DNA of 64,000 nucleotides from Blepharisma stoltei ATCC 30299 (GCA_965603825.1 CBFDEM010000038.1:499582-563581), one strand, 5' to 3'. Counted from the stretch's first letter, positions 4,170-61,628 are shown. Numbers and translations are program-made. Notes: generated from the sequence alone by a model not told the origin.

Positions 4170-4213
4170 TTGAGCTCTGTGCAAGTCCAGTCATATTGAT
4201 TATAAATTTATAT

Positions 4214-6766: not shown

Positions 6767-7744
6767 ATGAGGAGAAGTTATAGTCACACCTACCTTAATT
6801 CTTCGCTAACATCTCCGTCAAATTCGACCTCAAACCAACCTATAACTCTTCAAGGCAATTTATCAAAAAAATTCCCTGACACAAACTCCTCCAAATGGGA
6901 AGGCTTATCTTTAACTGGCAATCCCAGCAATGCTAAGCAGTTAGCTGGAATTCGGTCTCCACGACGTTGGGACGAATACAGCAATGGGTCTCGAACTGTA
7001 ATCCCAAGCCAGCCAGCTACAGAGCCAATTACACCTCGCCGTACAATGACTCCTCGTGCCTCCAATGCAACAGGAAATCTTATGGACATGATTAATAAAG
7101 GATACTCCAAAGAAGAACTAGGGACTTACTCAAGAAGAGTCTCTATTAATGGAAAAACTGTATATTCAAATGCTACAAGCATTGACAATACTGCTTGTAA
7201 TGAAGCTTATAAAGGAAAAGGCATCTACGCCCCTGGGTTCATTCAAGATCGAAAAATAAGAAAAGAAAGCGGGATTGGCTTTGAAAATCGGCAAAGCCAA
7301 ATTTCGACCCTCCCTGGCCCACATAAAGAAGCTAAAGAAAAGCCGAGAGAAATTCGTATCAAGCCTGACTATTATTCACACATCTCTGATTTGCCTGGAT
7401 ATTTAACTAAACCAGAGCCTTCAGTTGAAAAAGCAAATCCACTTGTAAAATTGTCAAGACATACAGCGACTTCTATAGAAAAACAAAATATGCTAGGGCA
7501 AACACCTGACAAGACTGGACCAAAACGAGAAATAATTCCTTCTAAGAAGCCTGCCGACTCAGAGTTTAATAACATTGGAAAGGAAAGGGCGCTAAATCCT
7601 TATAGCACAGGCAAGCTTTCTAATAAAGAAGCCCAACAAAGGCTACTTGGAGCTAGTAACTCTGAATGCACTGATTTCAGCAAAAGAGCTCGGCCGATGT
7701 CGGCAAGAGACATGTTTAAAAGCAGCATCCCATTTTTAAGTTAA
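6767..7744 (+). CDS. Hypothetical 325-aa Ser/Pro/Lys-rich, probably disordered protein
   Basis: Uninterrupted ORF with an AT-rich leader and an internal repeat QISTLPG/HISDLPG. No domain recognised. Confidence 0.75.
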   Translation: MRRSYSHTYLNSSLTSPSNSTSNQPITLQGNLSKKFPDTNSSKWEGLSLTGNPSNAKQLAGIRSPRRWDEYSNGSRTVIPSQPATEPITPRRTMTPRASNATGNLMDMINKGYSKEELGTYSRRVSINGKTVYSNATSIDNTACNEAYKGKGIYAPGFIQDRKIRKESGIGFENRQSQISTLPGPHKEAKEKPREIRIKPDYYSHISDLPGYLTKPEPSVEKANPLVKLSRHTATSIEKQNMLGQTPDKTGPKREIIPSKKPADSEFNNIGKERALNPYSTGKLSNKEAQQRLLGASNSECTDFSKRARPMSARDMFKSSIPFLS

Positions 7745-7756
7745 TTCGTCATTTAA

Positions 7757-9070
7757 TTACTTACAAAAACAGCAAAAAATCTTTTTCAAGCTACTTTTTT
7801 TAGTTTTTTCAGTCTGTGTGCATTTCACTGAGAGCGGGTGTCTTTCTTCTTGTTCAGTCCCATTGTATTCTTCATTGTGTTTTTCTTCATGATGCTCATT
7901 AGAATCATTAATTTGATATGAAATAAAATTATTGTTACTCATTGAATACATCGAGCTGAATTCTTCTGAGCTTTCAGAACCATGAACGACTTCTTTTAGC
8001 TTTCTAGGAGGTTTTCTTTTGTGTACTGAAGAGTCCAAAACTGCAGGCTTCCTTTCGTTTTCGTCTTCTGATTGATTTGTAAATTTCATTGCTCATAACT
8101 CATTATCGATTTTTCAATCACTTGAAAAGTCATTATCAATTTTTAGTCTATTTTTGACAGATTTTCCATTGATATTAATATCTTCAGGAATCGGAATTGT
8201 GAAATCAGGATTGCTAAATGAAAACACACTATTATGCCCAAATGACTTAGAATTTTGTATCGAGGAAATATTTTCCCCTGAAGGAAAAGCTTGAAATAGC
8301 TTCATTTTCTCTGCTTTCGAGCTATCTAATATTTTCAAATCAATTGATGAGCTAGATATACTTTCCATCACAGAATCTTTAAGTAAATAGCTTACGCCAT
8401 CCTCTAAGTCGCTGCTTTTCATTTTATTGATAAATCTCCTTAAATCTCTTCTGATATCCTCCACATTAGACTGAAGCGAATTGGTCATTTCTGGCTTTTC
8501 TGTGCTCTGGCTACCTTCAATAGCTGCTTTTAAATGTGAGCTTAAATATCTTTCCTCGTTTTCCTCTATTTTTCCTTGAGTTACCTCACTTGGTTCCAAG
8601 CTTAAAGTCGGTATATAATTCCCAGTGGTCTCTTCCTCCTGAATAGAGGCAAAAATCCCTTGAAGTTTTGAATTTTTGTTTAAATTGAGCTGAATAAGAG
8701 TTGGGATTATCAGAGCTTGTTCTATCTCACTTAAATATTTGACTTTTAGATATCGTTCTTGCTTTAAATAAGTACTATATTGCTAAATAACTCTTACCAA
8801 AATCGTAGTCTGGCGTTCCCTTATATCCAAAGCTCATTGTTTTCTATTTTCATCCAAAAATGCTTTTAGGTCATAGACCTGCTTTTTTAGCTTCAAACAG
8901 TTGAGCACCAGTCTTGCTTTTCTTTGGTCTTTAGCCCGCTGGAGCTCTAAAGCTTTGGTTTTATTTACATTTTGGGCCTTTTCGATCTGCTTTTTTACCT
9001 CTGCTATTTGACGTGTAAGTGTGTCTATGATTGACATGTCAAAATCTTCATCATCAAGGGACTTTTCCAT
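7757..9070 (-). CDS. Hypothetical coiled-coil protein (432 aa; one 15-nt intron) ending in KKIFCCFCK
   Basis: Track ORFs 8834-9070, 8114-8599 and 7757-8089 share one frame, joined by TGA codons and intron 8783-8797. The C-terminal Cys cluster suggests lipid anchoring. Confidence 0.78.
8783..8797 (-). other. 15-nt spliceosomal intron GTAAGAGTTATTTAG
   Basis: GT..AG with A at position 10; removes the only in-frame TAG. Confidence 0.85.
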
Positions 9071-9101
9071 GAAAATTAATTTAAAATTATTTCACATAGA
9101 A

Positions 9102-11789
9102 CTAGAAATCTTCATCCCAGTTCAAGTTTGACCCAGGCCGCTGCTTAGGTGTGATTGATGGGAAAGCTGAATTAGCCTCCTCTTTAGATATATAATCATC
9201 CAAATTAAAATGTAAAAGACCTGACTGAGCTGATTCTGTCTCAACTATCAAAGGAATTAAAGGTGGCTTTACCTGCTTAGAAAGCAAATTTTCCCACAAA
9301 ACAGTGGAAAATCATGAATTTGTTTTTAATTTTTGAATTGACCCTCCATTTCTAAGCGACGGGTTCAGATGAAGCAGCTGCTCAACGAAAACTCGTGCAG
9401 GCAAGCTTTGGTCAAGTCAAGAAGGGAACATCAAGTTATGGTCCAAAATTTTCTGGTAAATTGCGAAAGGGTCTTCTTCGTCTTCACCAAAAGGCACACT
9501 CCCACATATAAACTCATATAGAATGATCCCCATGCTTCAATAGTCAACTGGGGTCCCATAGCCTTTCCCAGTGATTATTTCAGGGGCCATATAGTGTGGA
9601 GTCCCTACAATCGTGAAGGTTCGCCCTTGCAAAATCTTAGCAACCCCGAAATCTATTAATTTCGGGTATCCATCATCGTCGACCATTATATTTTCAGGTT
9701 TCAGGTCTCTATAAACAATATCTCGCTCATGTAAATGTTCTAAAATGACGACTAAACAAGATATATAAAACTTTGCGTCACTTTCTGATAATAGCCCCAT
9801 CTGTCTTATGACATCAAACAATTCTTGGCCTCTTACATATTCTGTCAAAAAATAAATGCGTTTTTCGTCTTTAAAAGTCCTTATCAGCTTCATTATCATT
9901 ATATGGTCGAGCTGCATCAGGACTTTTCTTTCTAATACCAAATTGTTTTGAATTTGGTATCTGAGGACTTTTTTCCTTTCTACAGTTTTTAAGGCGTAGC
10001 AGGTTTTTTTGGACTTATGCATGACTAAAAATACGATCCCAAACATACCTCTGCCAAGGGTCTTTTTGATGATCAAGTCTTGCAAATTGACATTTGTGTC
10101 TTGAAGCTGTATTCGTTTGACAAGGAGATTTTTGATGTCATCGTTTATGATGTTTAAAAAATCTTTTTGATGTAAAACCCAGCAGGTGACTTGGCCTGAT
10201 GCTTTTATGGAGGCAGTACGGAGGTCGTTGTAAAGGACTGATCTTTCTCCAAAGTAGTCATGCTTTGCTACTGTACGAACTCTTATATGATTTTTTATTA
10301 CTTCAACTCGCCCTGTTTTTATAATAAAAAGGGAATCCCCAGGGTCGTTTTGTTTAAAAATGAAATCTCCGTCCTGGAATTCTTCTAATTTTAAACAGTT
10401 CATTAGCCGAATGATTTTATCTTGAGACAGGTCTCGAAAAATCTGGACCTTTTTAAGCACAGCCAAAGCTTCATTTTTGTTAATAATTTCAATAAACTCC
10501 CCACCAATTAAAATTTCAAATTCAGCCCTTGATATAACAGCTATATCAACTTTTCCTTCCGCTATAAGTTCTTCTGGGTAAATTTCATTAAAATTTCCAG
10601 TTATATCTAAGTCACCTAAACAGCAAAGTGACTCATAGACTTTAGTTCCGGAATGGTTTCTAAGATTTCCTTTTAGTAAAATATATAATGCTACCCCTTT
10701 TTCAATGCCTGCATTAATAACAATTTGGCCATGCTGGAAAGTATGGACTCTCATACTCCTAATTATAGATTCAACTTGGTCTCTTGTTAATTGTGAAATA
10801 TAAGGGCTTCTTTCCAGTGCAATTCGTTGTGTATTTATGTAAATAATGTGTTGGAGCTTGCTGCCCAGCACTTTTGTTAAAGAGTCTCTCCCAATTGCTA
10901 AGCACTTAACCTGAGTAATTGCAATAACTGTTGCAGTTCGTACACAGTTATGAAGTAAAGCTTGCTCTCCAAAATAATCTCCTCTTCCCATGCTTCTTAT
11001 TTCTTGCCCCTCCTTCACACAAGAAACCGTTCCTTCCTTAATAAGGTAAAACAAGTCTCCAGGCTCGCCTTCGTTTACAATCCTCTGCTGTGGATAAAAT
11101 GCATGTGTTGATAGAGAGCTAACCAGCGCATCTCTTTGTTGTACAGTTAAAATTTGGAAAATTGGCACAGTCTCAATAAAATTGAGATTTTCTTGATAAT
11201 TCATGGAATTCAGTTGCTCTAGTGTCGTTCTAAATGTTTGTCGGTCAACACCTCAAAGAACTGTTTTTTCTATTGTCTTTATAGTCGCACTTCTTGGGGT
11301 GTCATGGAGAAGTGCAAGTTCTCCAAACGAGTCCCCTGGCTTTAGGATTTTTGTCAAAGTTCCATTGATAATTACTTGCAGCTTGCCTGAAGCCACAACA
11401 AAAAAATTGCCTCCAGGCTGGTCTTGCATAAATACTATTGCATCAGGGCTCAAAGCGTAATGCTTCATTTTGCCTATTATAAAATCGAGCTGATCCTCAG
11501 TCAAGCTATTGAAAATAAAGTGTTTACTCAGGGCATATTTAATATTATCCACTTCTCTTCTTGTTTTATCTTTATCGGTCACCACTGCTGTCGGAGCATC
11601 TAAAGTGATTTCTTCTTCTAGCCGAGAATCGAAAGCAGATCCTTTCTTTTTAAAAAGTTTCCTCGCTCCACTGTTTTCAAATGTATTAAGACTGATTTTC
11701 TGTTCTTCTTGCACTAGCACTGTGCTAAGCAAGCTTCTTGAATCGACTGAATGTATTGACGGCTTTGCAATTGACATACAAACTCCCAT
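9102..11789 (-). CDS. PKG: cGMP-dependent protein kinase, alveolate type (895 aa; four cyclic-nucleotide-binding domains)
   Basis: MGVCMS acylation N-terminus. CNB motifs FGELALLHDTPRSAT, FGEQALLHNCVRTAT, a degenerate third domain, and FGERSVLYNDLRTAS. Kinase motifs GRGMFG, YRDLKPEN, DFG and GTPHYMAPE. TGA at conserved Trp: L(W)GVDR, DY(W)SMG, NS(W)F. Confidence 0.95.
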
Positions 11790-39894: not shown

Positions 39895-40445
39895 ATTTAT
39901 ATATGTTCATATTTCATGAGGGAAAAATGTTTAAATTTAGGGAAAAATGAAATTCTATAGATAATAAATTAGATATTATTGATAAGAGAGGGTTAAAGAT
40001 AGACCGCATCAGGCTAAGAATAAACTGAAGCAAATTTTAAGAATTTTAATTCTAATTAGAGCTAAAGTTAATTTGTCATCTAATAGCATATGCAGCATTA
40101 ATTTTTGATTAAGATTTTAATAGTTTATGTATTGGAAAAGAAATATTTCGTTTTAAGCTTTCTCTCATAACTACTCAAAAGAATATAAATGTATTTAAGT
40201 GTCAAAATAAAACTTTTATATAAATTCAGTTATCTAGACTTTTCTTAGCAATAGGAAAGAAATAATACATACACAAAAACTATAGATATATTATAAAAGT
40301 TAATAGTCACTAACAAGATTGGTATTCTCTAACACTAAATCAATACCACCTTTTTTCATGCACTTCTTATGAAAATCTCTATATCTCCATCCCATCATTA
40401 TCAATTTTATTTAATCATCTTCCGATATTCTCGTCATAATCAAAA

Positions 40446-42413
40446 ATGGATCGACAACAGTTTAAAGAAACAAAAAAGATCCTCGAGCACTCCCCACAAT
40501 GCAAAAACTCAGGGTCAAGAGCCTTCAAAAACACAGCTTCTTCTATAAATGAAGAAGACAGCAGCCCTCCCTTTGGCTCTGAAGATGAAATTTTTGATTC
40601 TTTTAGCATCATGGGGTCAATCAGTGAAGGTGTCCAAGTCCAAAAGGTCCCTAAAGTCGAAATGAGCCCGAAAATTATTAAAGTCGAAGCTGCACCTCTT
40701 GATGCGCATTTAGAGAAGCGCTTATACGACTTCTTCAGAGACCCATCACAAGATGATTTCGTTGGCAAGCTTTCTGACCTTGATAAATCGAGCGAAACTA
40801 CAGAGCCAACCCAGGAGGGGAACGAAAGGATGAACCAAGCTCTATGAGACGCAGCTGAAGCAAATCAATATGAAACCTGCAGAATGCTCATGGACAAGCA
40901 TCTTCATGGAGATATAGTGGCCGATGTTAATAGCCACATGGCAGGTGGACTTACAGCCCTTCATATAGCTGCACTCAAAGGGCACGTCAAAGTATGCGAA
41001 ACACTATTGGATTATGGAGACAGCACAGATTTAAACTCACAAGATGCCTCATTGAGGACTCCTTTACATTTGGCATGCATGCACGCAAAGCTGCAAGTGG
41101 CTCAGCTACTAGTCAGGTCAGGAGCTTTTTTAAATGCAGTCGACATTGATGGGAACACGCCTTTGCATTATGCAGTTTTGACTGAAGATAAAGACTTCCT
41201 CCATTGAATTTTGTGCAGGTTCCCAGACTTGAACTTAAAAAACAACCAAGGGAAAACTGCTTTAGAAATGACAGACAAAATCAGTATCCACGAAATGGCA
41301 GAAAAGAAGCGGTCACCACCTCCGCTGATTGATATGACCCCTCAGAGAATAAAAATCAGGAACTCAATAGACGAAATAGCTGACTTTATGATGCAAAGGG
41401 TTTCTAATGTAAAATGCCCTTTTAGCATCCCAGAAACCCCACATCCAGAAAAGAAAAGGATTTCTCCACTTGATTTTCAAGCAATACAACAAATTGGAAA
41501 AGGCAGTTTTGGAGAAGTTTTTTTAGTAGAAAAGAAAGACACCCATGAACAATTTGCAATGAAAATCTTGAGGAAAAATAAAGTAATGGGGCAGAATATT
41601 GTGAAATATGCTATGACTGAGAGAAATGTCCTGAGCTATATGAAGCATCCATTTATTGTAGGGCTAAAATATGCATTTCAAACCCAAAATAAGCTTTTTT
41701 TAATATTGGATTATTGCCCAGGAGGGGATTTAGGATCCCATATAGCTAGAGAAAAAAGGTTCAGTGAAACTAGGGCAAGAATTTACCTTTGTGAAATTTT
41801 GGTAGCATTAGAAGAGCTGCATAAGCGAGATATCATTTTTAGAGACTTAAAGCCAGATAATGTCGTTTTAGACTCAGAAGGCCACGCAATGTTAACGGAT
41901 TTTGGGTTGTCTAAAGAAGGGGTCTTAGATAACTTCTCAGCAAAATCCTTTTGTGGATCTGTCGCATACTTAGCCCCAGAAATGCTAAAGCGACAAGGCC
42001 ATGGCAAAGCTGTTGACTGGTATTTATTAGGAGTTTTACTATATGAAATGCTGGTAGGAATCCCGCCTTATTTTTCTCACAATAAAGACCAACTTTTCCA
42101 TAATATCCAGCATTCGACATTAAAAATCCCTACAAGTCTGAGCCCAGATGCTAAAAGTCTGATGAAAGGCTTATTACAAAGAGAACCATCTAAAAGGCTA
42201 GGAAGCCGACGAGATGCTGAAGAAATCAAAGAGCATCATTTCTTTTATGGGATAAACTGGGACTCAGTTATGAGAAGGGAGTTGAGGCCACCACGGCCTC
42301 CTAAGCCAATTATGGTCCATGGGACTGTTTCTCAAGAAAGGGTAGTGGCTGCAGAAAGCTTGGTGAATAATGAGACCACCCACTTGACTGGCTGGACATT
42401 TATATCTGAATAA
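40446..42413 (+). CDS. Ankyrin-repeat AGC (RSK/AKT-like) Ser/Thr kinase (655 aa)
   Basis: Ankyrin repeats TALHIAA, TPLHLAC and GNTPLHYA; kinase motifs GKGSFG, FRDLKPDN, DFGLSKE and SFCGSVAYLAPE. Three ORFs joined by two TGA. Confidence 0.93.
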
Positions 42414-45651: not shown

Positions 45652-46527
45652 ATGGAATGAAGTAAAACAGAAGGCAAGAGCAGTGATCATAAACCAAAAG
45701 ATTCTAAAATTATCCATAAGGAAACCCATTTAAAAGATCTTCCAGAAACACCATATATTTCATATATACCCAGGAAGGAGTGCTTGAGGACTTTTGACGT
45801 TTTAAAACAGGTTAAATCTGACTCTACGATAAATCTACCAATGCAACGAGGAAATATTAATGATATTAATGTAGTATTATGCCGGCTACCAGAAAACAAA
45901 TATTTTTGTTATTGCTGTAGAGCTTTTGATGAAATTGGGACTGTTTTTTGTATTGATTCTCACAATCATTTAGAGATTTTTGAATCTGAACTGGCCTATT
46001 ATCAATCATTTTGCGTTTATTGTGATGGATTTGTATATGTTCTAGGAGGAAATAATAAATCTAGCCCATTGAGCCAGTGTATTAGGTTTAACTTATTCAA
46101 AAAGAGATGAGAACGTAGAGCTAATTTTGTAAATCAAATTTATTATTATTCAGGAGGGCAAATTCAAGGATTTATCATTTATTCTGCTATGAATGGAGTT
46201 AATATTTATGATCCTTTTGCCAATTCCCATCAAGAAGTACTATCTAATCTGTCCATTTCCAAGTTGGTTTTTGCAGGAAATTGCAAAGGGTACTGTCTAG
46301 AGTTTTCTGGAGGGATTTATGAAAGTGATTTTAATAATATTTTTGCTTGGAAGCATGTGGGGAAGCTTTATTTTAAGTTTTCACCATTGCTGGGATATGA
46401 AGTTTGTATCCAAAATAATATTTATTTCACTTGCTGGCCATATGTTTATAAATTTAGCTTGAATAAGTACACTGTTGAGGAGTATTTTAGCTTTGAAAAC
46501 CCTGAATCTTACTTAAAAGCTATATAA
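45652..46527 (+). CDS. Kelch-like beta-propeller protein (291 aa)
   Basis: LCRLPENKYFCY and VYVLGG..CIRFNLFKKR(TGA)E; similar to the propeller of genes 46608 and 59624. Confidence 0.8.
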
Positions 46528-46607
46528 ATGGTAAGTAGTTTTATAGAAATCACGAAATTTACGAAGTCCAGTTTTTATAAATTTTTTAATAAACTTATAA
46601 TTTTAAT

Positions 46608-48320
46608 ATGGTGATACTGAGTTGCTTTCAAATAGACTGCAAAAAAGAAGTTAAGTATAGGTGCCAGTGCACTTCTCCTGAGACTTACATGTGCGAAAAA
46701 CACTTATCGAAGCACCTTAAGCGATTAGGCCAACATTCCTTTGAAAGTATGTTCCTGGAGCCCCTAGATCAAACAAAAGAAGCTATTCTGGAATTTATTA
46801 CAAAAAAACAAACTAAAAATGAGAAATTAAAGAAAAAAATTCTAGCTTATTTTACGATAAGAATAAGCAGATCTGAAATCGGGGTTAGAGAGATGATAAG
46901 CCAGCTCGATTCTGACTCAACAAAACTGTTTTCTCTATTTCAAAAAATTAATATGGTTAATAAAGTATCTATTCTCGAGCAGGATCCGATTTTAAAACTA
47001 TTGCCTTTACCCCCTGATGAAGCAATTGTTAGAATTAAACCAATTATAAAAAATCTAGATTCAAAAAATTATAATTGCAGCTTAAATGATGCTGAAATTG
47101 ATAATCAGCTGACTAAAATTAGGGAATCTATTTCGAATCTGAGAAATGATATGAAGAAAGACAAAAAAGAGCTTGAAGATTGAAAGAAAAAAATAGAAGA
47201 GAAACTTGGAACTCTTATAGAAAAGCAAAAATGTGAAGACCCTCTGCAAATTAATAATCTTGAAGAAAAATTACAAAAAGAACTTAAAAATATGGAAAAT
47301 TCAATTAATTCCCAGCAAAAGAATGCATTGCTTCCAATTTTAGAATTAAAAAAAAATGGTATGGAAAACTCTCAGGTTAATTTTCAAATAAATGAGCTGA
47401 AAGAAAAAAAAAGACTATTTTTAGACGGACAAAATAATTCAGAGATAGGAAGAGACTTCAGAAGAACTTGCTGACTTTATGAAAATGAGCTAAAAACGCT
47501 TTTAGAGTCAAATAAAGATTTGGAGGAGGCTTATCTAGACTACAAAAATAGTTATAATCAATCAGTTTCTATATACCTTTTAAACTTAGATGACAACCAA
47601 AATACCAATTTGATCATTTTTGACACAGAAAATGAAAAAGAAGCTTTTGTTAGGCTAGATAATGCAAAACCATTAAATACAGGCACATGCTTAGCCCAAA
47701 TTCCTGGAGGCGAATTGTTTTGCTTTGGCAGTCAATACCCACCTTCTGGAGTTACTATGATGATTGATACAAAATATAAAACTCGGATGCTGCCAAGTGG
47801 TAGACCATGCTACTCTTCTTCATCTATATACTGCAATAGAAGCATTTACTGCTTCGGCGGATTATCCAAGAGTGATGAGCTATTAACCCTAGCAGAGAGG
47901 TTTGATTTAGATGAAATGAGATGAATAAAATTATCTCCATTGCCAGCAGCAGACGGTAATTGCCATTGCATATTGTTCAAAGAGAATATTTTGATTTCTG
48001 GCTATCGAAATCAAAACCTTATGCGGTATTCAATTAAAGAAAATGCTTTTAATTCAATTCCTTTTAAATTTGCGGAGAGAAAAAAGAAGCTTTTAATTAA
48101 TGACGATAGGTTGTATTTGATTGAGTGTGATGGGTTAATATATGAAAGTGAGGCTGGAGATGAGTATAGATGAAAAAAAATCGGGAACTCAATAATTAGT
48201 GATAAATGACCTCCTCAAGTTTATTTGTCATACAATAAAGAAGCAGTTTACATTGGATGCAGGTATCCTCATGCCTATTATAAGTTTAATTTAGATGAAA
48301 AAGTAATGATTCAGCTTTAA
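46608..48320 (+). CDS. B-box-like Zn module + coiled coil + Kelch-like propeller (570 aa)
   Basis: C-x4-C-x7-CxC-x7-C-x2-H-x3-H-x6-H N-terminus, EQDPILKLL motif, and IYCFGG..AERFDLDEMR(TGA). Four track ORFs lie in one frame. Confidence 0.85.
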
Positions 48321-48891
48321 AATTTGTTATAATATTAGGCTTAGACTAATTTAATTTCTCTTAGAGCCTACAATTTTATTTTTTGCTTATAAATAGGATT
48401 TTAAACCTATAGGCTACTGGAATAAAAACGGAGGCATAGTTGATGCCGATATAGCTAGAGGATTTATCAAAACAAAAAATCAAGTTGCCAATCCTAAGTT
48501 TTCACTCCATAGAATTTAAAATAGGAAGCGCCGAGTATTTAATACTATTCCTTTAGACAATATCTTTGCAACTTAAAATCCAGCATGGAGACCACTGGAA
48601 ATAAGCAAAATTTTCAGAGGATTTTCCAAGCTCAAAAATAATTGAAGCAAAAGCAAATCTTAAAATTTATGGGTCTCCCACTTTTATAACATATTTTTTT
48701 CAATTGCATTCATCTTTTATATGAATTTATTATTTGCTTAATCCCTTCATTATTTTTTTTCTGCTTAAGCAATTATAAAATGCTTTACTTTTCTTCAATT
48801 TCATAAAGCTATATTCATTTAGAATAATCGTTATTGAAACTCTTTTTTTGTAATAATATTGCATCATATTTTTAAACATTCTGATCATAAT

Positions 48892-51561
48892 ATGGAAATC
48901 AAAAAGTGCTTTGAGCCGAGCTGTAACCTTGAAGCTGAATATATATGCCAATGCACTTCCCTTGGAATATTCTCGTGCGAATTGCACATAGCGGATCATT
49001 GCAAACAAAATAGCCTTTCTCATAATTTTGACTCTATATTTTTACAGCCAATAGAAGAGACTAAAAACGCGATTCTTGGATTTCTTACCGAAGAAAAGGA
49101 TCAAAGAGAGCAAAGACAAAAGAAGCTAGCAAATTTGTTTATAAATAGCCTTTGAACTTTAAAACGGATATTCATAGAACTATTAAAAGGGCTTGATGAA
49201 GATTCTACAAAAATTAAAACTTATTTTGAAAAGATTTCTCAAGCGCAAAGACTCTCAAAATTTGAGAGTGACCCAATTTTGAAATTATTAGTTTTGCATA
49301 CTGATGAAGCATTAGAAAAAATTAAATCAGTCACCCAAGAAAAGTCAAATTCAGTTTATTGCGAAAACCTATTTTGTAGGCTTAATGATGAAATTTTCAA
49401 AACAATAAAAAGTTTTAATCAAGAAAGCATCGGTATTGATCTAAGCCAAAGATTGACTGAGATAGAAAAAGACGCTGAAAAGCGTAATGAAATTATTAAT
49501 TTAAATAAAAAAGACATGCTGGATTCGTATAAAAACATGGGAGCCATTAAGATTGATCCAAGTTGTGACACAGCATACAATGATGCTGGGCTTGCCTTTT
49601 ATAACCAAAAGATGTACGACGAAGCAATAAAATATTATAACAGCGCAATTGAAATTCGTCCAAGCTGTGCAATTTATTATAAAAATAAAGGAGATGCTCT
49701 GAAAGAGCTAGGAAGAAACGAAGAAGCAATGGAATGCTATAAGGAAGCTGTCAAAATTAATATTAGCTATGATGCAGCATATAATAATATAGGAATTATC
49801 TTGTTTAAGATGAAAAGGTATGAAGAAGCGATGCAATCATTCATGGAAGCAATTAAAATAAATCCAGAATCCTCAGTTTATCATAAAAATAGAGGAGATG
49901 CTTTAAAGGAACTAGGTAGAACAGCAGAAGCAATTGAATGCTATAACCAAGCGATTAGGATTAATCCAAATTTTGTGTCAGGATACAACGATTTAGGAAT
50001 GATTTTATATGATGAAAAGAGATATGAAGAAGCGATCAAGTACTACAATGAGGCAATCAGAATTGAACCAGACAGCATTAATATATATAAAAATAAAGTA
50101 TTAGCATTAAAGCAGCTAAGCAGAATTTCAGAAACAATAGATTGCTGAAATGAAATTATCAGAATTGGTCCAAAAAACGCTTCAGCTTGCAATGAGATGG
50201 GAATTTACTTATATGATGAAAAAAGATATGAAGAAGCAATAAAATATTTCAATATAGCAATCAAAATGGAACCAAATAGTGCGGTTTTCTATAAAAATAA
50301 AGCTCTACCTCTAAGAGAAACCAAAAGAATAAAAGAGGCTATGGATTGCTATAGTGAAGCTATTAGGATAGATCCAAACTTTGTTTCAGCTTACAATGAA
50401 ATGGGAATTGTACTATCCAATGAAAAAAGAGATAAGGAAGCAATTGAATATTATAATAAAGCAATAAGAATAGAGCCCACTGATGCAATTCTATATAAAA
50501 ATAAAGCGATGTCTCTAAGGGAACTACGAAGGATGAATGAGGCAATTGATTGCTATAATGAAGCTATTAGAGTTAATCCAAATTTCGTAGACGCTTATAA
50601 TGAAATGGGAATTGTCTTACATGGTGAGAACAGAAATGAAGAAGCAATCAAATATTATAACGAGGCAATTAGATTAAAACCAAATTCAGAAACTATATAC
50701 AGCAATAAAGCATTAGTTTTGAAGGAACTAGGAAGAATCGAAGAAGCAATAGAGTGCTATAATGAAATAATTAGAATTAATCCCAAAAATTTATCAGCTT
50801 ACAATGATATAGGAAATCTCTTATGAAATGAAAAGAGATATGAGGAATCTATCAAGAATTATGAGGAGGCAATCAAAATTGAGCCAAAAAATGAAGTTTT
50901 GTATAAAAATAAAATAGGCGCTCTAAAAAAACTAAAAAGAATAGATGAAATAATAGAATGCTACAATGAAATGATCAGAATTAATCCAAATAATGTTTCA
51001 ACCTTCAATGATTTCGGAAATTTCTTATCCAGTGAAAATAGACATGAAGAAGCAGTAAAATATTATAACGATGCAATTAGAATTAAACCTAATGATACGG
51101 TTTTATATAAAAATAAAGCACTATCCCTAAAAGACCTAGGAAAAATAGATGAAGTAATTGACTGTTATAATGAAATGATTAGAATTAATCCAAATAATGT
51201 TTCAACCTTCAATGATTTTGGAAATTTCTTATCCAATGAAAATAGACATGAAGAAGCTGTAAAATATTACAACGAGGCAATCAGAATTAAGCCTAATGAT
51301 ATAGTTTTATATAAAAACAAAGCACTATCCTTGAGAGATTTAGGAAAAATAGACGAAGTAATTGGCTGTTATAATGAAATGATTAGAATTAATCCAAATA
51401 ATGTTTCAACATACAATGATTTAGGAATTTACTTATACGGAGAAAAGAGATATGAGGATGCACTAAAATATTACAATGATGCAATTAGAATTAAACCAAG
51501 TGATAAGGTTCTACGTAGCAATAAATTATTAGCTTTAAAGGCATTAGGAAGAGTAGAATAA
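48892..51561 (+). CDS. B-box-like Zn module + coiled coil + about 19-20 TPR repeats (889 aa)
   Basis: Same N-terminal module as 46608, followed by 34-aa TPRs (AYN..G..L....RYEEAI.YY..AI.I.P). Four ORFs joined by TGA. Confidence 0.9.
50971..51520 (+). repeat. Near-identical 204-bp (two-TPR) tandem units
   Basis: ATGATYAGAATTAATCCAAATAATGTTTCAAC recurs at 50971, 51175 and 51379. Confidence 0.88.
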
Positions 51562-51796
51562 TAAAATGCTATAACATCATAAGAAATAATTTAGTATTAA
51601 TGGGTTTAAAAATTAATTTATCCATTTTAATTATGTTAAAATAATGATTTTAATTCACAAAGATTAATTTCTAAAATATAAATTGCTAAAATTTTGATAT
51701 TATGTGACTTCAGATCTGTTTTGATTTTATTAGTTTTTTTCTGCGCTTTATTTTAAATAATTTAGTATAATTTAAAAGAGAATGATTTATTAATAT

Positions 51797-54112
51797 TTAA
51801 TGGTATTTTTTCTTCTTGTAAAACGCAAGATAGAGCTTATGCCAATCAGGGTCATTTTTGCTGACTATATCATCATCATATTTCTCCCATTCGCTATTAT
51901 TCTTAGTAAATGCTATGAAATGAAACCCATAATAGCATATTACTCCAAAAATTTGATAAGTTTCATTACTAATCTGCAACTCATCTGGTATTTCATTAAA
52001 ACCTTGGTGATCAGGCATATAAATTGTTAAAATATCAGGCCAATCAACTCTTTCAGTTTCCAGAGTTATATCTCTCAGTTCTCCACATCTGTCGCACATT
52101 AGCTGATTTTCCCAATTAAAATACTTCTTTTCTCCAACAATATTGTTTAAAAATTCTCTTATATTGCTTTGGGAATTTTTTGGAATAATTATAAAATTTG
52201 AAGATTCTTCGACATATGATTTATGCTTGTAAGGGCATGTAAAAGTTTGCGTTTTAGCCACTTTAAAAGGATTTGCATCTTCAATTTTATCTGAGATGAT
52301 TAAAAACAGCTCTTTTGAATCATTTGGAGACCTTCCAGCGTACTAAATAAATATTACCATCGAGTATTCTTTTGAAATTATATCTTTAAATTCACTGATA
52401 TGTGGCATTATTGATATCTTTGAAGCATTACTATTCATTAATGATATAACTGAATTCAGGCTCTGTAATAATTTATTGCTACTAATGCTGCTTATTGATT
52501 TTGTAAATTCAGAAATACTTGCTAATATTTGTATAACAGAATTCATATAGCAGGTATTTCCTATATTTGGCAAGCCTGATTTGCTATAAATTAGAGATCT
52601 TGTCGGTAGAGTTTGAGTCTGAGTATTTAAGGACCGTCTTTGCCTTTCAGCTTCTTGATAATCTTCAGAAAATATATTTTGTCTTGATGGCAGAGTCACT
52701 GTCTGGCCAATTATCTGATACTCGGTTTTAGGTTCATTTGAGCGAACAACAGATTGTCTGAAAATTTCAGACTTATATTTTTCTATTTCTTCCTCAATTG
52801 CTTTTAACTGTTTAACTGCTAATTCTATGTTGCTCTCTAGCTCAGCTATTTTATTCTTGCTAGTATCGTTGCTTTTTAGTATATTTTCGATGCTATTATC
52901 AACTTGCCATTTCCAATCCCCCAATCCCTTATTTAAGTCATTGCTTTGAGCCAAAAGCTTTTCGGTATAAGATTTATATTCCTCTATTTCATTTTTAATA
53001 CTTTTGATGTCATTATTAGCATGAAATTGCCAATCTTGTATATCCTTGTTATAATTCTTTGATTTCTCAATTTCATTTAAAAGACTTTCTAGCTTTGCAT
53101 CAGATTTATTTTCTATTTCCTCAATGTAATTTAATTGCGATTTTAATTTTTCAATAGAAATTTTGTTTTCATTTTCAATTCTTTCAATTTTTCTATTTAA
53201 ATCCTCAAAATGTGCGTTTATACTGTCACTATTGGATTTGCAATTTTTATTCAACTTATTTAATTCAGATTTAATGCCCTGAACTTGAATATTGGTATAT
53301 TCTTTACAGGTTTCAATACTTGCAGTAGCTTTGGTGGATTTGAACTCCAATTCATTTAATTTGGAAATTATTTCACTGCTATTTGCATTTACCACTGATT
53401 TTATATAATCCAATACCCTATCATTTTTAAGGAATTCTTCTGGGCTTGGGCAATTATTTTGTTTTCGCTCATTGTCCTTGGAGAATTTTTCTAATTCTTT
53501 CATTTTATTTGTAAGCACTTCTTTAATGCGATGGAAATCTTTTTCTAGCTTATACTCCATAGCTATAGTGCTGTTAGAATTTTTTGTTTCTATAATATCG
53601 GCTGCTGAATGTATCTTCTCTTCACATTGAGCTAATAACCACTCTATCATGCTTTCGGACTTATTTTCGATATCCTTTTCTATCTTTTCAGCTAATTTCT
53701 CTTGTAATTCAGTGAAATAATTAGCTATAGCGCTTGCGCTTAATATTATTTGCCTATTATCTTGAAAACCGCTGCTATTAGGTAAGCTCAGGCTTTGTAA
53801 TTCAATTTTTTGATGGGAATTAGGTTCTTTTTCAACAGATAGAATATTATTCTGTTTTCTTGAATAACTGTCAATATCTCTATTTAGATTACCATTGCCC
53901 AAATTTGTTGAAGAAGTAGACGGGTGGCTTATTGGGGATATGTGAAAATCAGGAGGTAAATCTTTTCTATAATGAGGACCTTGCTCATAGTAAATGCTTT
54001 GGGCATTAATTTGATCGATCGCAAGAGGTTTTAGGTCTTTCCTTATATAAACTAAAATCGATGGCGAATATACTGTTGTCAATTCCAATTTTTGCGTCAA
54101 CAACCAAAACAT
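51797..54112 (-). CDS. Ubiquitin-specific protease (USP/C19) with long N-terminal coiled coil (766 aa or longer; one 15-nt intron)
   Basis: Cys box GLPNIGNTCYMNSVIQIL; His box GFHFIAFTK..WEKYDD; intron 52343-52357. The true start may be 54389 in a shifted frame. Confidence 0.85.
52343..52357 (-). other. 15-nt spliceosomal intron GTAATATTTATTTAG
   Basis: Joins the Cys box and His box halves of the USP domain in frame; A at position 10. Confidence 0.9.
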
Positions 54113-54389
54113 CTTTTAGTGGTTCACTTTCTATTGTATGACTAATGTAATTCATTCAGTTTTTATTTCTCTCGCAAATTTTGTAAAATATTTCTAGAGT
54201 GCCTCAGCATGACTCGAAACCTCTAATACTGAGAAGTTGATTATCAGAAATCCCATTTCTAAATGCATTTGTCGTAATTTCATGCAGATATCTGTCCAGC
54301 ATTTGAAACCTTGGATCCAGATATGCATTTATGTTGCTGCTAATAGTCGCTATCATCCAGCATGCCCGCCTCAAATGAAAATTGCTCAT
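54006..54389 (-). CDS. 127-aa ORF, probably the frameshifted 5' part of the USP gene
   Basis: ATG 54389 has a good AT-rich leader and reads through two TGA. It overlaps the USP ORF by 107 nt in another frame. Confidence 0.45.
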
Positions 54390-54819
54390 TTTTATTAGTT
54401 TCTACAAATTCAATTAACCAAAACTCAATCGCTAAATGTATTTGTCGATGTGATTTAATGGCAGCAAAGCAGTCGTTAAGGAGACGGCATGTCAAAAATT
54501 AAAATACTTAAGAAAATGCGATAAAAGGAGTTTTAAAAATCAAGCTTTTGCTTGATAGGACCAATTATGCTTTAATACAGCTTAAACTTTATAGACTAAA
54601 AATTATTAGCAACAAATCTAATTTATGTTTGGGCCGACAAGATATTAATGACTTGGAAATATTCAAATCTAAAAATTTATTTTAAAAGCAAAGTGAGTTG
54701 ATAGTTGATAAATATTTACAAAGCAGTTTAAAGACTTAGTTTATTAGATATAATTTTTTCAAGTAACTTTAGCTTAAGAAATGTGAAAATCTTCAGGTCA
54801 GGTCAAAGTTAATCATAAT

Positions 54820-56620
54820 TATTTGGAGTCTAATAATCTACGGAGATCAGTTAATCAAAAGACCCAATCTATAACTGGAAAAAAAATAAATGAAGATAAT
54901 ACAAGAAGTATCTCATATAGCAATAAATTGTCAACTAATGCAAACACAAGAGATTCAAGAAATGCTGACTCAGGTAGGCATGAAAGTAGAAGTGGAATCA
55001 GAGAGTTGCGAGCACAAAACAAAGTTTGCAGTATTCAAAGACTATTAAAGCACCCAACAAAAACCAAGCATAATGAGGAAAATCAAAAATTGCAAACGAA
55101 AATATTAATCCACTTCAAGTCCACCCGAAACATAGGATCAAAAGATACGATAATAATTTCCAGCATGATGGCGCATTTTATTTTCGCTAAAAGCTGGAGG
55201 AGCTTAGCCTGCGAATTTAGGAAGAATTTGCATTGTGAGAAAGGATTCTGCGACGCATGAGCCTTTCTAGTGCTGAATCTATGAAGCATTGTATTGAAAT
55301 AAAGATAAAGATATGATTCAACGAGGAGTCAGGGAGCCAACGCATGGATATTTTTTATATAATTGAAGTTAGAGATCCAGTGGATTCCAGGAAAACTTTT
55401 TATTTTAATTGCCTAACCTGGATGAGCAAGTAGGTGGTGCATTTAAAACAAAATTTCTCGTGAATTTGAATGCACTTGGAGATCTGAGGTTGTAAAATAT
55501 GCGGAGTTTCTGCTTGGTAGAAGTGATAAGGCTTGTGCTTGTTGAAAGATATGACAATTTGCTATGGAAGAGATTAACGGTTAATTAAAAAGAGAGAAGT
55601 GCTTGCAAGACCGGCAGTAAAAGTTTTAGATAAGATAGCATTAAAAGATACTAATTTAAGTGTTCATTATGCATCATAATGCTGGCTATTAATCTCAGTT
55701 AAACTTTCAAGCACAGCTCTATTTGATGCAATAGAATTGAGCTATAAGATATAGGCTGAAGAGCTAATTAAACAAATAGGTTATACTGAAGCTAGAGGAA
55801 AAGATTCAGAAGCTAAAAATGTATTATTGAAATTCTAATTGAAAAAAGGAAAATATTGAGGAAAGGCTGAGGAACAGTGAATCAAGAGTTTCTGAAAGGA
55901 TAATGAGAGAGTCTAATAGGAAATTTAAATAAAAATGATAAAATTAAGAAGAAAAATAAAGAGTTTGACTTTGAACTAAATAAATATAAATCGATACTAC
56001 CAAATCTGAAGCAGAAAATAAAGAATTGAGGCTCAAAGCAGACCAAGAAGAAAAAATAAAAGAGCAAGAGCAGAAATTTCACATTTTGAGCCAGAAAAAT
56101 TCTCAAATGAGCCAACAAAGTTAATCTTAACAAATGCAGCTACTTTAATAAAAAAAGTTCTATTAAAAGATAGAAAAAACCTTTATTGAAAGAAATCAAA
56201 ACCCAAGAGCAGATTATAAAGACTGCCAAAAAGAAAATGAAAGGCTTGCTGAATTAAAACAATTAAGTTCCCAGCTTAAATAAGAGCAGGATAAATTCAT
56301 CATGAAAATATAAAAGTAGACTTATTAAAAGCAACCTCGTAAAATACCACGGAGGGGTGCCAATCAAAGAAAGTACTTCTGACTTTGGAGCTATTAATGA
56401 ATAGAGATCGGAAAATGACGCTTAGACTTGCTCAAGATTTATTGGAAAAAGAGAGATTTAACTGAAAAAGAAATAATATCAAAAATTATTGAAAATTAAG
56501 AAAATTCCAAGCTAAAGTTGAATTCAGTTTTCTACAGCGCAAGAAGGCTTAGTTAATACCCAAAAATAAACAAAATCCATGAAAAAATCAATCACTTAAA
56601 GGAGGCGTATGAGAATTTTT
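54820..56620 (+). pseudogene. Decayed coding-like sequence (K/E-rich remnants, many stops)
   Basis: Purine-rich, coding-like composition, but I could not follow any frame far without TAA/TAG. Origin not recognised. Confidence 0.4.
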
Positions 56621-56629
56621 GTAAAGCAA

Positions 56630-56900
56630 TTGCTTAGCTCATCTGAAACTTGTTCCAAAAGCTGTTCAGAGCCATTTCTTGGTTCAACTAGACGCTAGCT
56701 AAAGGATGCTAGGAATTTTTCCTTCTGCTTGCTATTTTTTGACTACTCTTTTGTAAAAATCTAAGAATTGCTTCTTTTATTCCTTTAATCGGCTCTAAAA
56801 GTATTTTTTCAATAGCTTGAGCCTTACGAAGAAGCTTTAAATGTTACCCGAAGTGCAGTTCACAGCATAAATTGTACGAGAGGCGGACGGCATGCATATA
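56630..56900 (-). pseudogene. Pseudogene fragment of the B-box-like module
   Basis: LCCELHFG*HLKLLRKAQAIEKILLEPIKGIKEAILRFLQK aligns with SCEAHIGKHANLPDRAHNLESIFIQPYEGTKEAILEFLT; in-frame TAA and TAG. Confidence 0.78.
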
Positions 56901-56938
56901 TATTATTATAATTATGGCTTATTATAACCAAATTTTAT

Positions 56939-59624
56939 TTAAATCTGCAATTTTTGGAGTAGTTCATTACGGTCTCGACCTAATACATCGTTAATAAAAT
57001 TTATGTCTTTTTCCGAAAGCTCCCATTCATCCCCAGCAAAAATACCACTTACTTGATTTTCTTGCTTTAAATTGTAAGCCTTATTAAAGTCCTTCAAAGC
57101 TGCTTCTTGTCTGAGATTATTAAATACTCTAGCTCGGCTGCAGAAATGTAAAGGATTGTTGGGTTCAAGCTTGATTGCCTCATCATAGCATTCTATTGCT
57201 TCTTGATATCTCTCTAAAACATAAAGAGTATTGCCTTTACTATTATAAAACTTTGCATCTTTTGGATAGACTCTGATTGCTTCTTCATAATTTTCTACTG
57301 CTTCTGGGTATCTTCCAAGTTCATTTAAAGCATCCCCTTTATTATAGTAAAAATTAGCATCTTGTGGATTGTGTTTGATTGCTTCATCAAAGCATTCGAT
57401 AGCTTCTAGATATCGTTTTAGATTATAAAAAGATAATCCTTTATGATTATAAAATCTAGCGTTGCTTGGATCGAGTTTGATTGCTTTGTCATAACATTTG
57501 ATTGCTTCTAGATATCGTTTTAGATTATAAAAAGCTAATCCTTTATTATTATAAATATCAGAACTTTTTGGATTGAGTTTGATTGCTTTGTCATAGCATT
57601 CGATTGCTTCTAGATATCTTTCTAAATCATAAAAATAAAAACCTTTATTATTGTATAAATAAGAATTTTTTGGATTCTGTTTGATTACTTCGTCACAGCA
57701 TTCGATTGCTTCTAGTTTTTCTCCTGGCACGTTGCTGCCATTTTAATGTATATTGATAAATGATTGGGAAGAGTAAATATTCTAGAGTAGTATCTTTTAC
57801 ATTGCATTCATCTAGATAATAAGGTTCGAGTTTAAAATTCTGATTATTGCACTTTATTGCTTCAATCTTTTTACCTGCTCTTCTAAGTGAGAAATGCTCA
57901 TTATAATAAGCAACATCAATAGCGATTTTTTGATCTAAATTAAAATAATAATATTCTCTAATTGAACTAAAAATAGTTGAGATGTATATTCCTCCTTTAT
58001 TATATGTACAATAAGCTTGATTCGGAGCGCAATCGATTATTGATTTTCCAATTCGTCTCCAATTTCATAAACTTCCAACTTCGCTTTCATAGATTAATCC
58101 ATTTTGGCATTCAATCAAATATAGTCTCTCTGCATTTATCAGGATCTTTCTTTTCCGATATGCAAACTCATAAGGAATTGTCGAGAAAGAATCAATATCT
58201 ATTGAGTATAACAAAATATTTGTATTAATCCGTCCAGAAATCAAAATATTTCCATTAAATATTATAGTATGGCATTCATCATCATCTTCTGGCATTGAAG
58301 TTAATTGAATTCATCGATTTCGATCTAAATCAAATCTACTAGATAGAGTTAAAGCATAACTCTTTTTATTCTTTCCTCCAAAACAATAGATGCTGCTGTT
58401 GAAATAGATACATGATGAGTCAGAGCAAGGAGTTCCAGATGGCAACAATTCGAATTCACCGTTCACATCAATTAGCACTGCAATTCCAGAAGTTGGATAA
58501 TTACCAAAACAGAATAGCTTGCCATTTGGAAGTTGAGTTATGCAAGTTTTATCGCCTAATAGTTCTGGGATCTGCAAGAATTTGATTTCCCTGGCTTCAG
58601 TTTCAGTGTTGTAAATAATTAAATTAGTTCTGTCGTCCTCATCCACTGCTATATTATAAAGAGATGTTTTTTGGTGATAAGCTTTAAGATAATCTTGGCA
58701 AGCTTGAATTAATGGTGGATCATAAAAACGAGAATGGATGTGAATTGCTGAGCAAGTTGTATTGAAATCCATCTCTAATTCTGGATTGTTTGGCCTACTC
58801 AAAATCTCAGCTGTTTTATTTCTTAAGATGTCTATAAGGTTTAAAGCACTTTCTGCTTCTTTGGGTTTACTGTTGAGATAATTAGAAACAGTGCTTATTT
58901 GAGAATTAAGCAAACTTGTCTCGCTTTCTAAGCTTTTTTTTATTGGCCTGTTTGCGTTTTCAGACCCTTTTAATTTCTCACTGTTCTCATTTATTATCAA
59001 GGAAATCGAATCCTTAACGTTTGCTGACTCTATGGTTTTATTCACTTCAGGAGTATTTTGCATATTCATATTTTCTAGATATGCACCACCTTTTTCTTCA
59101 ACAAAGGATCTATTTAAACTCGCTAGCTTTTCAGTGATTATATAAAAGAATCTTGCACTGTTGTATCAATCTTTCATGGCTATAATCATCAATTTTACTT
59201 TCTCAACAGCTTCTCCAGGCTGTAAAACCAATAATCCTAATATTGGATCTTGCTCTAGCTTTGATACTTTTTTAACTTGGGAAATTTTTGCAAAGAAATC
59301 ATTTATTTCACCTGAGCAATCATCCAATTTTTTCCTAAAATCTCTTAAATTTCTCTTTAAGTTAAATGGGCAATTCTTAAAAGAATCTATGATTTTTCTT
59401 CTCAGCTCGCTGTACTTTGAATTTTCTATTGTAAGGAATTCAAGAATTGCTTCTTTTGTGCCTTCATAAGGCTGGATAAATATTGATTCAAGGTTATGAG
59501 CTCTATCAGGCAAGTTTGCATGCTTTCCAATGTGCGCTTCACAAGATAAAGTCTCAGGAGAAGAGCATTTGCATGAATACTTAACCTCATTCGTACAGCC
59601 TGACTCGAAACACTTCTTCGCCAT
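56939..59624 (-). CDS. B-box-like Zn module + coiled coil + Kelch-like propeller + TPR repeats, interrupted by a 49-nt insertion (658 aa as written, ending 57648; 878 aa if 57725-57773 is removed)
   Basis: MAKKCFESGC.. from ATG 59624 reads through TGA into the Kelch region and the first degenerate TPRs. The TPR ORF 56939-57730 is one base out of frame. TPRs occur as 102-bp near-repeats. Confidence 0.78.
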
Positions 59625-59846
59625 CGTATAATAATTATTAAATAGATGATTTTTAAAACTTTTTACATTCAAATAAGATATTCAACTCATCAGCAGAGAC
59701 TGGGTTTGACATGAAGAGCGGGATAGCAGGTTTTGGAATGTGCAGAGTCTCAGAAAATCTATTGAGAGCAGTGTACAACTTGAAAATCAACTCATCACAA
59801 CCAACACTTCAGGCAATAATGAATTAGATCCCGGACTCTTTATTAA

Positions 59847-60620
59847 AGACAGGATAAATTCAAATATTCACTGTTCTTAACTCGGAGGAAACGAAACTTG
59901 AAAAATCAGTATGTGAATGGCGAAATTGAGCTTGGCCTCATTCCCCAGGGTTATTTGGTTGAAAGACTCATAGCATGCGGTATTTCAGCTTTCCACATAC
60001 TGGTGCTTGCGGCTAGGTTGAAGAAGGCGACTTTGTCAGAAGTGTGGATAGGAGGGAAAATAGTAGAGAAGGTATCCACCCCGAGGGAGGTAAGAAATAC
60101 ATCCTTGAAGAAGCATTCAGAGGAGACTTTGGCCTCATCAAGGCTTAGAAATCAAACACTGAGGGCAGCTTGATTTACAGAAAGACTGCCAGGAATTTCA
60201 ACCTTGACATTGCTGGGTCTTCAAAATAACGATTGTAGAAGTCAAGAAGAAATCGTCCCTGCTGGCACTGTCGACCCAGTTCATATAATCGTTAAAGGTG
60301 AGTATTTTGAAAAGCCTATGAAAGGCTGGGTCTCAATACTGGAGATGAAATCGAGCTTCCTGGGACTCCTGAACAAATCAGGAAGCGTGAGAGAATTGAC
60401 AAAAGAGTTTCCAAAGAAATTCAGGACGCAATATATGTGAACTTTATTAGAATGCCAACCTTCGTGCCAAACTACTTGCCCAAAGGGTATCACAATTTTG
60501 CTTCATAAAGCTAGGAATAGGACCATATCTAAATCAGGTGAGCAATTTCCAAACGCTAATGCTGACAAAGAAACTATCACAAAAGTCTCCAGACAGCAAA
60601 TTTTTAATTTAACAAATTAA
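59847..60620 (+). other. 257-codon open frame (TGA=Trp) without an initiating ATG; relatively GC-rich; unknown origin
   Basis: Track ORFs 59898 and 60204 share a frame that continues to TAA 60618; bounded upstream by TAA 59844. Confidence 0.4.
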
Positions 60621-60659
60621 ATAATTATTATTATCAATATCAGAGAAAATTTTATTTGT

Positions 60660-61055
60660 TAAAATTATTCTGCCTTGGCTAAGATAACTATGAATTGCCA
60701 CTATTTTTTTTTATAATTCTAGAGTAAAAGATTTAATTTAGTTCAAAATAGATGATATCTTATTTGTGATCTGCCTAAAGAAAGTGATTATACCTCATTT
60801 ATTGTCTTTAATAGGAAAATTTTAATATCTGGACTTAGTCATACAGACATATATGAATACGATGAAGCTATTGATGAATGCTCTAAAATTCATGTAAAAG
60901 CTCTTAAATGCAGAAAAGAAAGACAGCTGGTTTTAGGAAATTCGAGAGTATATATAATTCAATTTCCCTTGTCTATTTTTGAAAGCAAAGTTGATGATCA
61001 ATATCATTGGCGATATACTGGAGAAATAAAAATTCAGCCTTATATATTCAATTAA
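60660..61055 (+). pseudogene. 5'-truncated Kelch-like propeller remnant
   Basis: KLFCLG* followed by RFNLVQNR(W)..FNRKILISG..RVYII..IFESKVDDQYHWRY, matching the propellers of 46608 and 59624. No start codon. Confidence 0.8.
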
Positions 61056-61628
61056 GAAAAGTTCATAGAGATGCTATTTTTGATGATTTTAAGACCTAAA
61101 ATACAGTTATCTCTTGAAGTCTGATTTTTTCAAATAATTGATTTTTGTTGCAAATGTCTACTGTATTTTGATATACTCATGCTGAGGGAACTGCTAAAAC
61201 TCTTTATTTAAATATGTATTATGCAAGCCTGACAATTAAGATCACTCCTGTAAAATAGTTCATAGTTGCTAATTGGAATAATGTAAGTGAAATTATAAAT
61301 CGAGCACAATTTTGAGCTTGATTATTATTTCTAAATTAGTCCCAGAATCAAACATGATAAGTTTATTCTCGTCATATGAATTAGCTGTGTATTAATATAT
61401 AGATCTAACTATAAAGTTCACATCACTCAAGATCTTCTTGTATAGTTATGTGAATTTTTGAGATAAGATTAAATTCATCTTCTTTGCTTTTAACCCACTT
61501 TAAGAGCCTAAAAGCAGTTACTGGTTTATATAATTCATATATGGAGCCCATTAAGAGAGCATGAAGTGATGGTTGATTGAAGAATTACATAGAAAAATTA
61601 TAGAAATCAACTCTATTGAAGAATAAAT

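Follow-up and report, generated by a model that had tools for sequence, protein, structure and literature searches.

The B-box/coiled-coil/variable-tail design is known from the TRIM/RBCC proteins, where it is described as metazoan-specific in its RING-bearing form and where a single B-box is always of type 2 (PMC2533329). The TRIM coiled coil is an antiparallel dimer (PMC12549529). A second point of reference is the F-box and MATH-BTB adaptors of nematodes, in which positive selection is found in the substrate-binding domain only (PMC4334554); in Kelch domains, it is the DA and BC loops that give the substrate pocket its shape (PMC3597819). Here we describe a gene family in which a ciliate employs this design for a growing repertoire.

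The 64,000-nucleotide stretch of DNA that was analyzed (the window) forms the right-hand end of contig C38 in an assembly of 41.46 Mb and 64 contigs. Its long reading frames appear only with TGA read as Trp (UGA=Trp), and the window fits the macronuclear genome of Blepharisma stoltei ATCC 30299 (PMC9942806), of which it is one contig end. As telomeres are added to this genome at ~46,700 alternative sites and its molecules are ~130 kb long (PMC9942806), "subtelomeric" is used here for a location close to the end of a contig. The window contains the following features:

45652–46527, plus strand: stand-alone Kelch gene, headless and divergent, 291 aa (family Kelch profile, E 1.6e-58)
46608–48320, plus strand: gene 1, intact, 570 aa, with a B-box-like head (46608–47039), a coiled-coil linker, and a Kelch propeller (47547–48317)
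48892–51561, plus strand: gene 2, intact, 889 aa, with a head (48892–49326), a linker, and 19 TPR units of two alternating types
51797–54112, minus strand: deubiquitinase gene of the USP type, whose N-terminus is a long coiled coil and which lacks the family head
56611–56900, minus strand: dead head remnant with stops and a frameshift (E 4.9e-13)
56939–57724, minus strand: TPR tail of gene 3, 5–6 TPRs (57155–57658) and a cap, out of frame and without a Met
57648–59624, minus strand: reading frame of gene 3, 658 aa, with a head (59193–59624), a linker, a Kelch domain (57912–58685), one partial TPR, and an out-of-frame end
57725–57773, minus strand: 49-nt insertion at the Kelch–TPR junction of gene 3, without GT-AG and not TA-bounded
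59650–60600, minus strand: upstream flank of gene 3, co-duplicated, 82% identical to the flank of a paralog at C48:10640
60720–61052, plus strand: dead Kelch piece
61222–61624: block next to the telomere, with 91% identity to the upstream DNA of a family gene that lies close to the left end of contig C51
61636–64000, plus strand: telomeric repeat array with an 8-nt unit, a permutation of CCCTAACA

The initial annotation had proposed three genes with a common N-terminal module, and the three heads at 46608–47039 (plus), 48892–49326 (plus), and 59193–59624 (minus) are indeed related, with pairwise identities of 41–46%. Their common part comprises ~145 aa, with eight Cys/His followed by a predicted 63-residue helix. 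The stand-alone Kelch gene, the dead head, the dead Kelch piece, and the telomere were all found as described. The tails had been given as Kelch, about 20 TPRs, and Kelch plus TPRs, which holds for the Kelch of gene 1 and the 19 TPRs of gene 2, but not for gene 3, whose 49-nt insertion puts the Kelch domain and the TPRs in different frames. Gene 3 is thus not an intact Kelch+TPR gene. Intact Kelch+TPR paralogs of gene 3 exist in the genome, and the insertion is missing from four in-frame paralogs. No hydrophobic segment was found in the window's genes. About half of the words sampled from the stretch with genes 1 and 2 are contained in RNA-type runs, which suggests that this stretch is at least partly transcribed.

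A DNA contig from another sample contained the 49-nt insert and the adjoining Kelch side with zero differences, so that an error of the assembly is excluded. The insert is skipped in one DNA contig of low depth, which stems from a paralog or an allele. Among the RNA contigs, no joint skipping the insert was found, and the listed RNA pieces over gene 3 differ from the gene 3 sequence. An intron was ruled out by the lack of GT-AG ends and of an RNA joint, an IES by the absence of TA ends, and a restart site by the ATG of the insert, which is out of frame. The genome contained no second copy of the insert but only a 19-nt match, in L032.

In the USP gene, the catalytic Cys and His motifs are present. 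An in-frame TAG sits within a 15-nt intron (52343–52357) that is spliced out in RNA run X8, and as this codon lies in an intron removed in RNA, the gene is intact. The spliced gene, searched exon by exon, is a distant relative of the USP tails that are fused to the family head elsewhere. It lacks the head and does not by itself support the link to ubiquitin that had been read from its presence in the cluster; head–USP and head–ubiquitin-like fusions elsewhere are the better evidence.

The pattern C-x4-C-x7-CxC-x7-C-x2-H-x3-H-x6/7-H was invariant in 28 head copies. Its residues C6, C11, C19, C21, C29, H32, H36, and H43 were present in 28/28 copies and 93–99% conserved in 156 diverse sequences, and these eight Cys/His would constitute a ligand set for two zinc ions in the style of a B-box. 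K57, D126, and L132 were invariant in 23 heads, and in the wide family, apart from T57/K58, conservation was limited to the zinc ligands and helix core residues. Pfam, including its zf-B_box profile, gave zero matches for the 23 heads, a PDB sequence search with the head matched nothing real, and Atlas B-box clusters reached only 0.82–0.84 against the head. The nearest Atlas models were ciliate B-box/RING clusters, and the Atlas neighbours were unnamed ciliate clusters.

With the predicted model of the finger (pLDDT 75), PML B1 (Foldseek probability 0.99, TM 0.65–0.73, with E-values that were not significant) and TRIM28 B-box1 (Z 5.5, and thus below 8, with an rmsd of 1.2 Å over 41 residues) were the best matches, in agreement with the B-box-like module of the initial annotation. 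CONSTANS-like and CYLD B-boxes were also among the top matches, and ZZ and RING folds ranked lower. B-boxes came first by both structure-comparison methods, with modest scores as expected at 50 residues, and the finger is predicted to have a B-box1-like fold. The coiled coil that had been placed after the zinc module corresponds to one predicted helix (54–116; pLDDT 96–98 over residues 61–110) that directly follows the finger and precedes three short helices. This helix of ~63 residues is shorter than TRIM helices. The family is RING-less, as had been stated: Pfam found no RING ahead of the B-box, and the head starts at Met1, with its first ligand at residue 6. No similarity of the head to F-box, BTB, or SOCS domains was found, by sequence or by fold.

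The hydrophobic period of the helix is 3.6. Its strongest long-range covarying pairs (72–101, 65–108, 69–109, 65–112, and 68–104) have i+j values of 172–178, and its hydrophobic profile is mirror-symmetric at i+j 173; the covariation band near 173 has a post hoc p of 0.001–0.03. The unbroken helix, together with the covariation and mirror symmetry near 173, suggests that the heads form an antiparallel homodimer with residue 87 at its centre, like that of TRIMs (PMC12549529). We regard this dimer as a lead, because the choice of the band was made post hoc. A hairpin within one chain would also be compatible with the band. Instead of the common docking partner that had been envisaged for the head, the covariation would thus point to antiparallel self-pairing.

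The predicted large repertoire was confirmed, with at least 180 distinct head loci tabulated in the genome and 300–400 candidates. Three profile searches of the genome covered the best 150 of 282–398 candidates each, the weakest scored with the broad profile having an E of 2e-23. A HMMER search of a sequence library with the head yielded 460 clusters at 50% identity, and some of these relatives came from freshwater metagenomes. One metagenome contig, which has a GC content of 25% and seems to read through TGA, contains four heads in tandem; another contig has 39% GC. Word-index homolog searches with the head, a method blind to fusions and distant kin, returned only the self match, and we found no description of this head family in the literature.

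Among the best 150 heads, 50 were followed by Kelch, 6 by TPR, and 3 by Kelch+TPR tails. The 57 best-scoring (young) heads, with the coordinates of the matches listed joined by hand, comprised 20 Kelch+TPR, 20 Kelch-only, 8 TPR-only, and 9 unassigned genes; TPR tails may be undercounted here. Further tails were WD40, USP, ubiquitin-like, WWE, MORN, pentapeptide, C1, and C-terminal Cys fingers, one of which is named RING-type by UniRef and has no Pfam match. Three head-fused USP domains are without the catalytic Cys (pseudo-USP), and most family members have no effector domain. The Kelch/TPR genes that were read have no introns. The family Kelch tail, whose profile matches KLHL20 (E 4e-28) and KEAP1 (E 1e-22), has at least 394 candidates in the genome, many of them without a listed head nearby, and one tail of this type is fused to a kinase head.

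Of the 57 young heads, 12 lay within 20 kb of a contig's start, versus 1.8 expected (P 1e-7), and 12 of the 25 young clusters lay no more than 20 kb from an end, compared to 2.2 expected (contigs of known length). Older heads were hardly enriched at ends (5/94 versus 2.9 expected; clusters 0/14). The term "subtelomeric" is therefore adequate for about half of the young clusters, but not for older members. Family fragments were also end-enriched. Flanks shared between contig ends point to ectopic exchange, and repeats favouring assembly breaks may also be a source of the end enrichment. Frameshifts, stops, or truncations broke 16 of the 30 best loci, the break of gene 3 alone having been compared with other reads. 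An explanation of the frameshifts by 15- or 16-nt introns was rejected, as GT-AG candidates were absent at the breaks.

On a head tree of 99 rows with 15 tail labels, a quick tree with many open forks, the labels changed 27 times, at a minimum of 14 and a shuffled mean of 47.5. The tails are thus strongly clustered on the head tree, which means that swaps were occasional founder events followed by duplication. All three window genes fall within one young clade of the head tree (support 98). The head and Kelch trees agree in their deep groups; they conflict within the Kelch+TPR clade (p-AU 0.044 and 0.008, for groups named after seeing the trees), and the Kelch domain fused to a kinase falls within the Kelch genes that bear a head (100/100). 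For P0022/P0038, a separate second origin of the Kelch+TPR tail was unsupported (p-AU 0.10). Tail swaps are real and occur at both linker ends, but they are rare relative to duplication, so that the tails are "swappable" in a more restricted sense than originally proposed. Turnover of the repertoire proceeds by tandem and ectopic duplication, occasional linker recombination, changes in TPR number, and frequent gene death.

Selection was analyzed with codon models (table 4, F3x4, M1a versus M2a, without multinucleotide changes), and the codon analyses drew on ~35 loci. A dN/dS analysis, which the initial annotation had called for, indicated strong positive selection on the Kelch tails, with Kelch omega values of 6–8 at LRTs of 104–148 and a head LRT of 0. 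In seven genes of the Kelch+TPR clade, a positive class was absent from the head (omega 0.52), and 9% of the Kelch codons had an omega of 8 (LRT 104). Ten Kelch tails gave an LRT of 148, which became 108 with three codons masked around gaps and 115 with a star tree; analyzed by thirds, the LRTs were 46, 27, and 8, each of them significant. Overall, the positive class comprised ~8–11% of the Kelch codons, and the omega of scaffold codons was near 0.1. In older Kelch-only genes, the LRT was 16 for Kelch and 0 for heads. Sixteen null simulations, eight of them with recombination, gave LRTs of 4.5 at most. Synonymous diversity was 0.146 near and 0.144 far from hot codons, and hot codons varied at all three positions, with all four bases used. 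Local hypermutation or an adenine-specific change of the DGR type was ruled out by the lack of a synonymous rise and by the variation at all positions and bases.

Of 17 selected Kelch sites, 14 directly precede strand A or directly follow the Gly-Gly position. Aligning the motifs with solved Kelch domains, and not a model of the family Kelch, places these sites in the DA or BC loops of the substrate face. TPR units vary at positions 2, 5, 9, 12, 13, 33, and 34 (ligand-groove positions as named in PMC1261162), with selection at positions 2 (LRT 12) and 5 (LRT 15); in gene 2's own TPR units, no selection was found. Tails thus diversify on their binding faces under positive selection, and the head does not. 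None of the outcomes that the initial annotation had named as contradicting it was observed: the family has many copies, head and Kelch trees that are partly incongruent, young members enriched at contig ends, Kelch tails under positive selection, and no counterpart found in a characterised family with a fixed architecture.

We consider it somewhat more probable than its negation (about 0.55) that these are dimeric, RING-less, TRIM-like recognition proteins and that foreign proteins are their opponents in an arms race. The head would be a two-zinc B-box1-like finger with a long helix, as the fold prediction indicates, and from the covariation most likely an antiparallel homodimer, so that each dimer would show two copies of the tail. 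Judging by domain position, the Kelch top-face loops and TPR groove residues would bind ligands. Selection drives the tail faces apart, most likely against changing foreign intracellular proteins; symbionts, parasites, viruses, or ingested prey could be their source. If the proteins cluster on a repetitive target, their B-boxes could assemble into higher-order structures, as those of TRIM5 and PML do, and pairing of the head with family members bearing ubiquitin-related tails could route the target to degradation. The proteins of this lineage-expanded family would be soluble. A constant head with diversifying tails resembles the pattern of intracellular immune receptors, and the proteins may have an immune role. 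It is doubtful whether this extends to an entire modular intracellular immune repertoire, arisen independently of animal TRIMs, in which hundreds of B-box/coiled-coil sensors with diversified Kelch/TPR faces would co-assemble via the head with rarer ubiquitin-related, WD40, or other effector tails.

The ubiquitin-related tails could also indicate, close to the proposal of the initial annotation, that family members serve a ubiquitin ligase, of the cullin type or another, as its substrate adaptors, with the head docking on one constant component, like F-box or BTB domains, and the tails picking substrates. This is rather unlikely, as the head resembles neither of these domains nor SOCS in sequence or fold, and as conservation confined to the zinc ligands and helix core, T57/K58 apart, leaves little invariant surface for a fixed partner. 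The arms race could be internal, with tails that recognise proteins of germline transposons or selfish elements in nuclear development, or that act in self/non-self or mating recognition. Positive selection does not tell foreign from selfish ligands, and TRIM28 and PML, whose B-box1 domains are the closest folds, are nuclear silencing proteins; we nevertheless regard this as unlikely. Mostly non-adaptive turnover, in which an ordinary coiled-coil/Kelch scaffold family was amplified and shuffled at unstable ends and decays under relaxed selection, would agree with the 16/30 broken copies, the end-enriched fragments, the co-duplicated flanks, the young-clade head omega of 0.52, and a transcription of gene 3 that was not visible in RNA contigs, but it is very improbable and for the Kelch tails largely refuted, as relaxation brings omega near 1, not to 6–8 confined to binding-face codons at normal synonymous rates, with scaffold codons near 0.1.

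For the recognition of intracellular invaders by free-living protists, TRIM-like proteins of this kind are a concrete, testable candidate: they have a constant head that annotation tools miss, the selected codons can be named exactly and map to binding faces that are known, and intact genes are available for expression. With the metazoan TRIM/RBCC proteins (TRIM5alpha, PML/TRIM19, TRIM28, the TRIM-NHL proteins, and the RING-less TRIM29 and TRIM44), the family has in common a B-box fold, a long helix with short return helices, a variable and fast-evolving C-terminal binding domain, and lineage-specific expansion. It differs in the lack of an N-terminal RING, in a single B-box that is closest to type 1, in C-x4-C and CxC spacings that escape Pfam zf-B_box, and in tails that are Kelch, TPR, WD40, or USP, not SPRY or NHL. 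Having no RING and a single type-1-like B-box, the family does not belong to the TRIMs (PMC2533329), and its design was probably assembled independently of them from shared parts. In the genome, canonical ciliate B-box proteins account for 62 Pfam PF00643 matches, whose listed positions never coincide with family heads; the family head is a separate, Pfam-invisible B-box lineage.

With nematode F-box/MATH-BTB, plant F-box-Kelch, and BTB-Kelch (KLHL) adaptors, the family shares a constant N-terminal module and birth-death expansion, and with those of the KLHL type also the Kelch binding face (PMC3597819), but its head is a B-box/coiled coil without a cullin-docking domain. As in arms-race adaptor repertoires, selection acts in the binding domain and not in the constant domain, and birth-death turnover is found. 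The young LRR genes of Tetrahymena are a similar ciliate repeat-protein expansion with its youngest members near chromosome ends and with ectopic recombination, but their LRR arrays are built from 90-bp exons, in contrast to the intronless Kelch/TPR genes with a zinc head (PMC6564038). Unlike targets of diversity-generating retroelements, the Kelch hot codons show no adenine-specific template-repeat hypervariation. The family is thus TRIM-like in design and resembles the nematode F-box/MATH-BTB adaptors in its evolution (PMC4334554).

Outside the window, family members show further architectures and arrangements. At locus L034 (551-2539), a protein kinase, a coiled coil, and a Kelch domain are fused, the Kelch domain coming from within the family with the B-box-like head, and this fusion is a recent head replacement. 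A pair of head-Kelch genes at L033 (4508-7886) is arranged head to head with a spacing of 420 bases, one of the two being intact and the other frameshifted. The coiled-coil linker of a further member (L029, 1-1932) is long and internally repeated, and the corresponding part of the L037 linker contains a tandem repeat of about 108 nt. On contigs C19 and C60 of the B. stoltei assembly, close Kelch and TPR relatives are clustered, with no head among the matches listed; these clusters may carry other heads.

Within the window, the family cluster is preceded upstream by a gene that is predicted from its translation:

40440-42413: ankyrin-repeat and AGC-type kinase gene

Two blocks accompany the family genes. 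The GC-richer block at 59847-60620 has open frames overlapping on both strands and was co-duplicated with family genes. As these frames are not kept in the copy at L023, the block is probably a decayed gene. Decayed, coiled-coil-like frames lie on the + strand at 55880-56600, and the DNA of this region matches L032, L049, and L034 at 85%, where it adjoins other family genes.

Around the USP-type deubiquitinase gene inside the cluster, DNA sequencing runs differ from the window. Just upstream of this gene, at 54240-54246, one contig of run X6 contains about 660 extra letters, probably a germline-limited IES. A joint in runs X5 and X6 over 54943-56007 omits 1063 letters and has 25 different letters in between, reflecting either a paralog or a structural variant.

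Family arrays also occur in another organism, which is probably a ciliate. Its contig, L051, from a freshwater metagenome, carries four family heads in tandem (4200-10708), with 25% GC and apparent TGA read-through.
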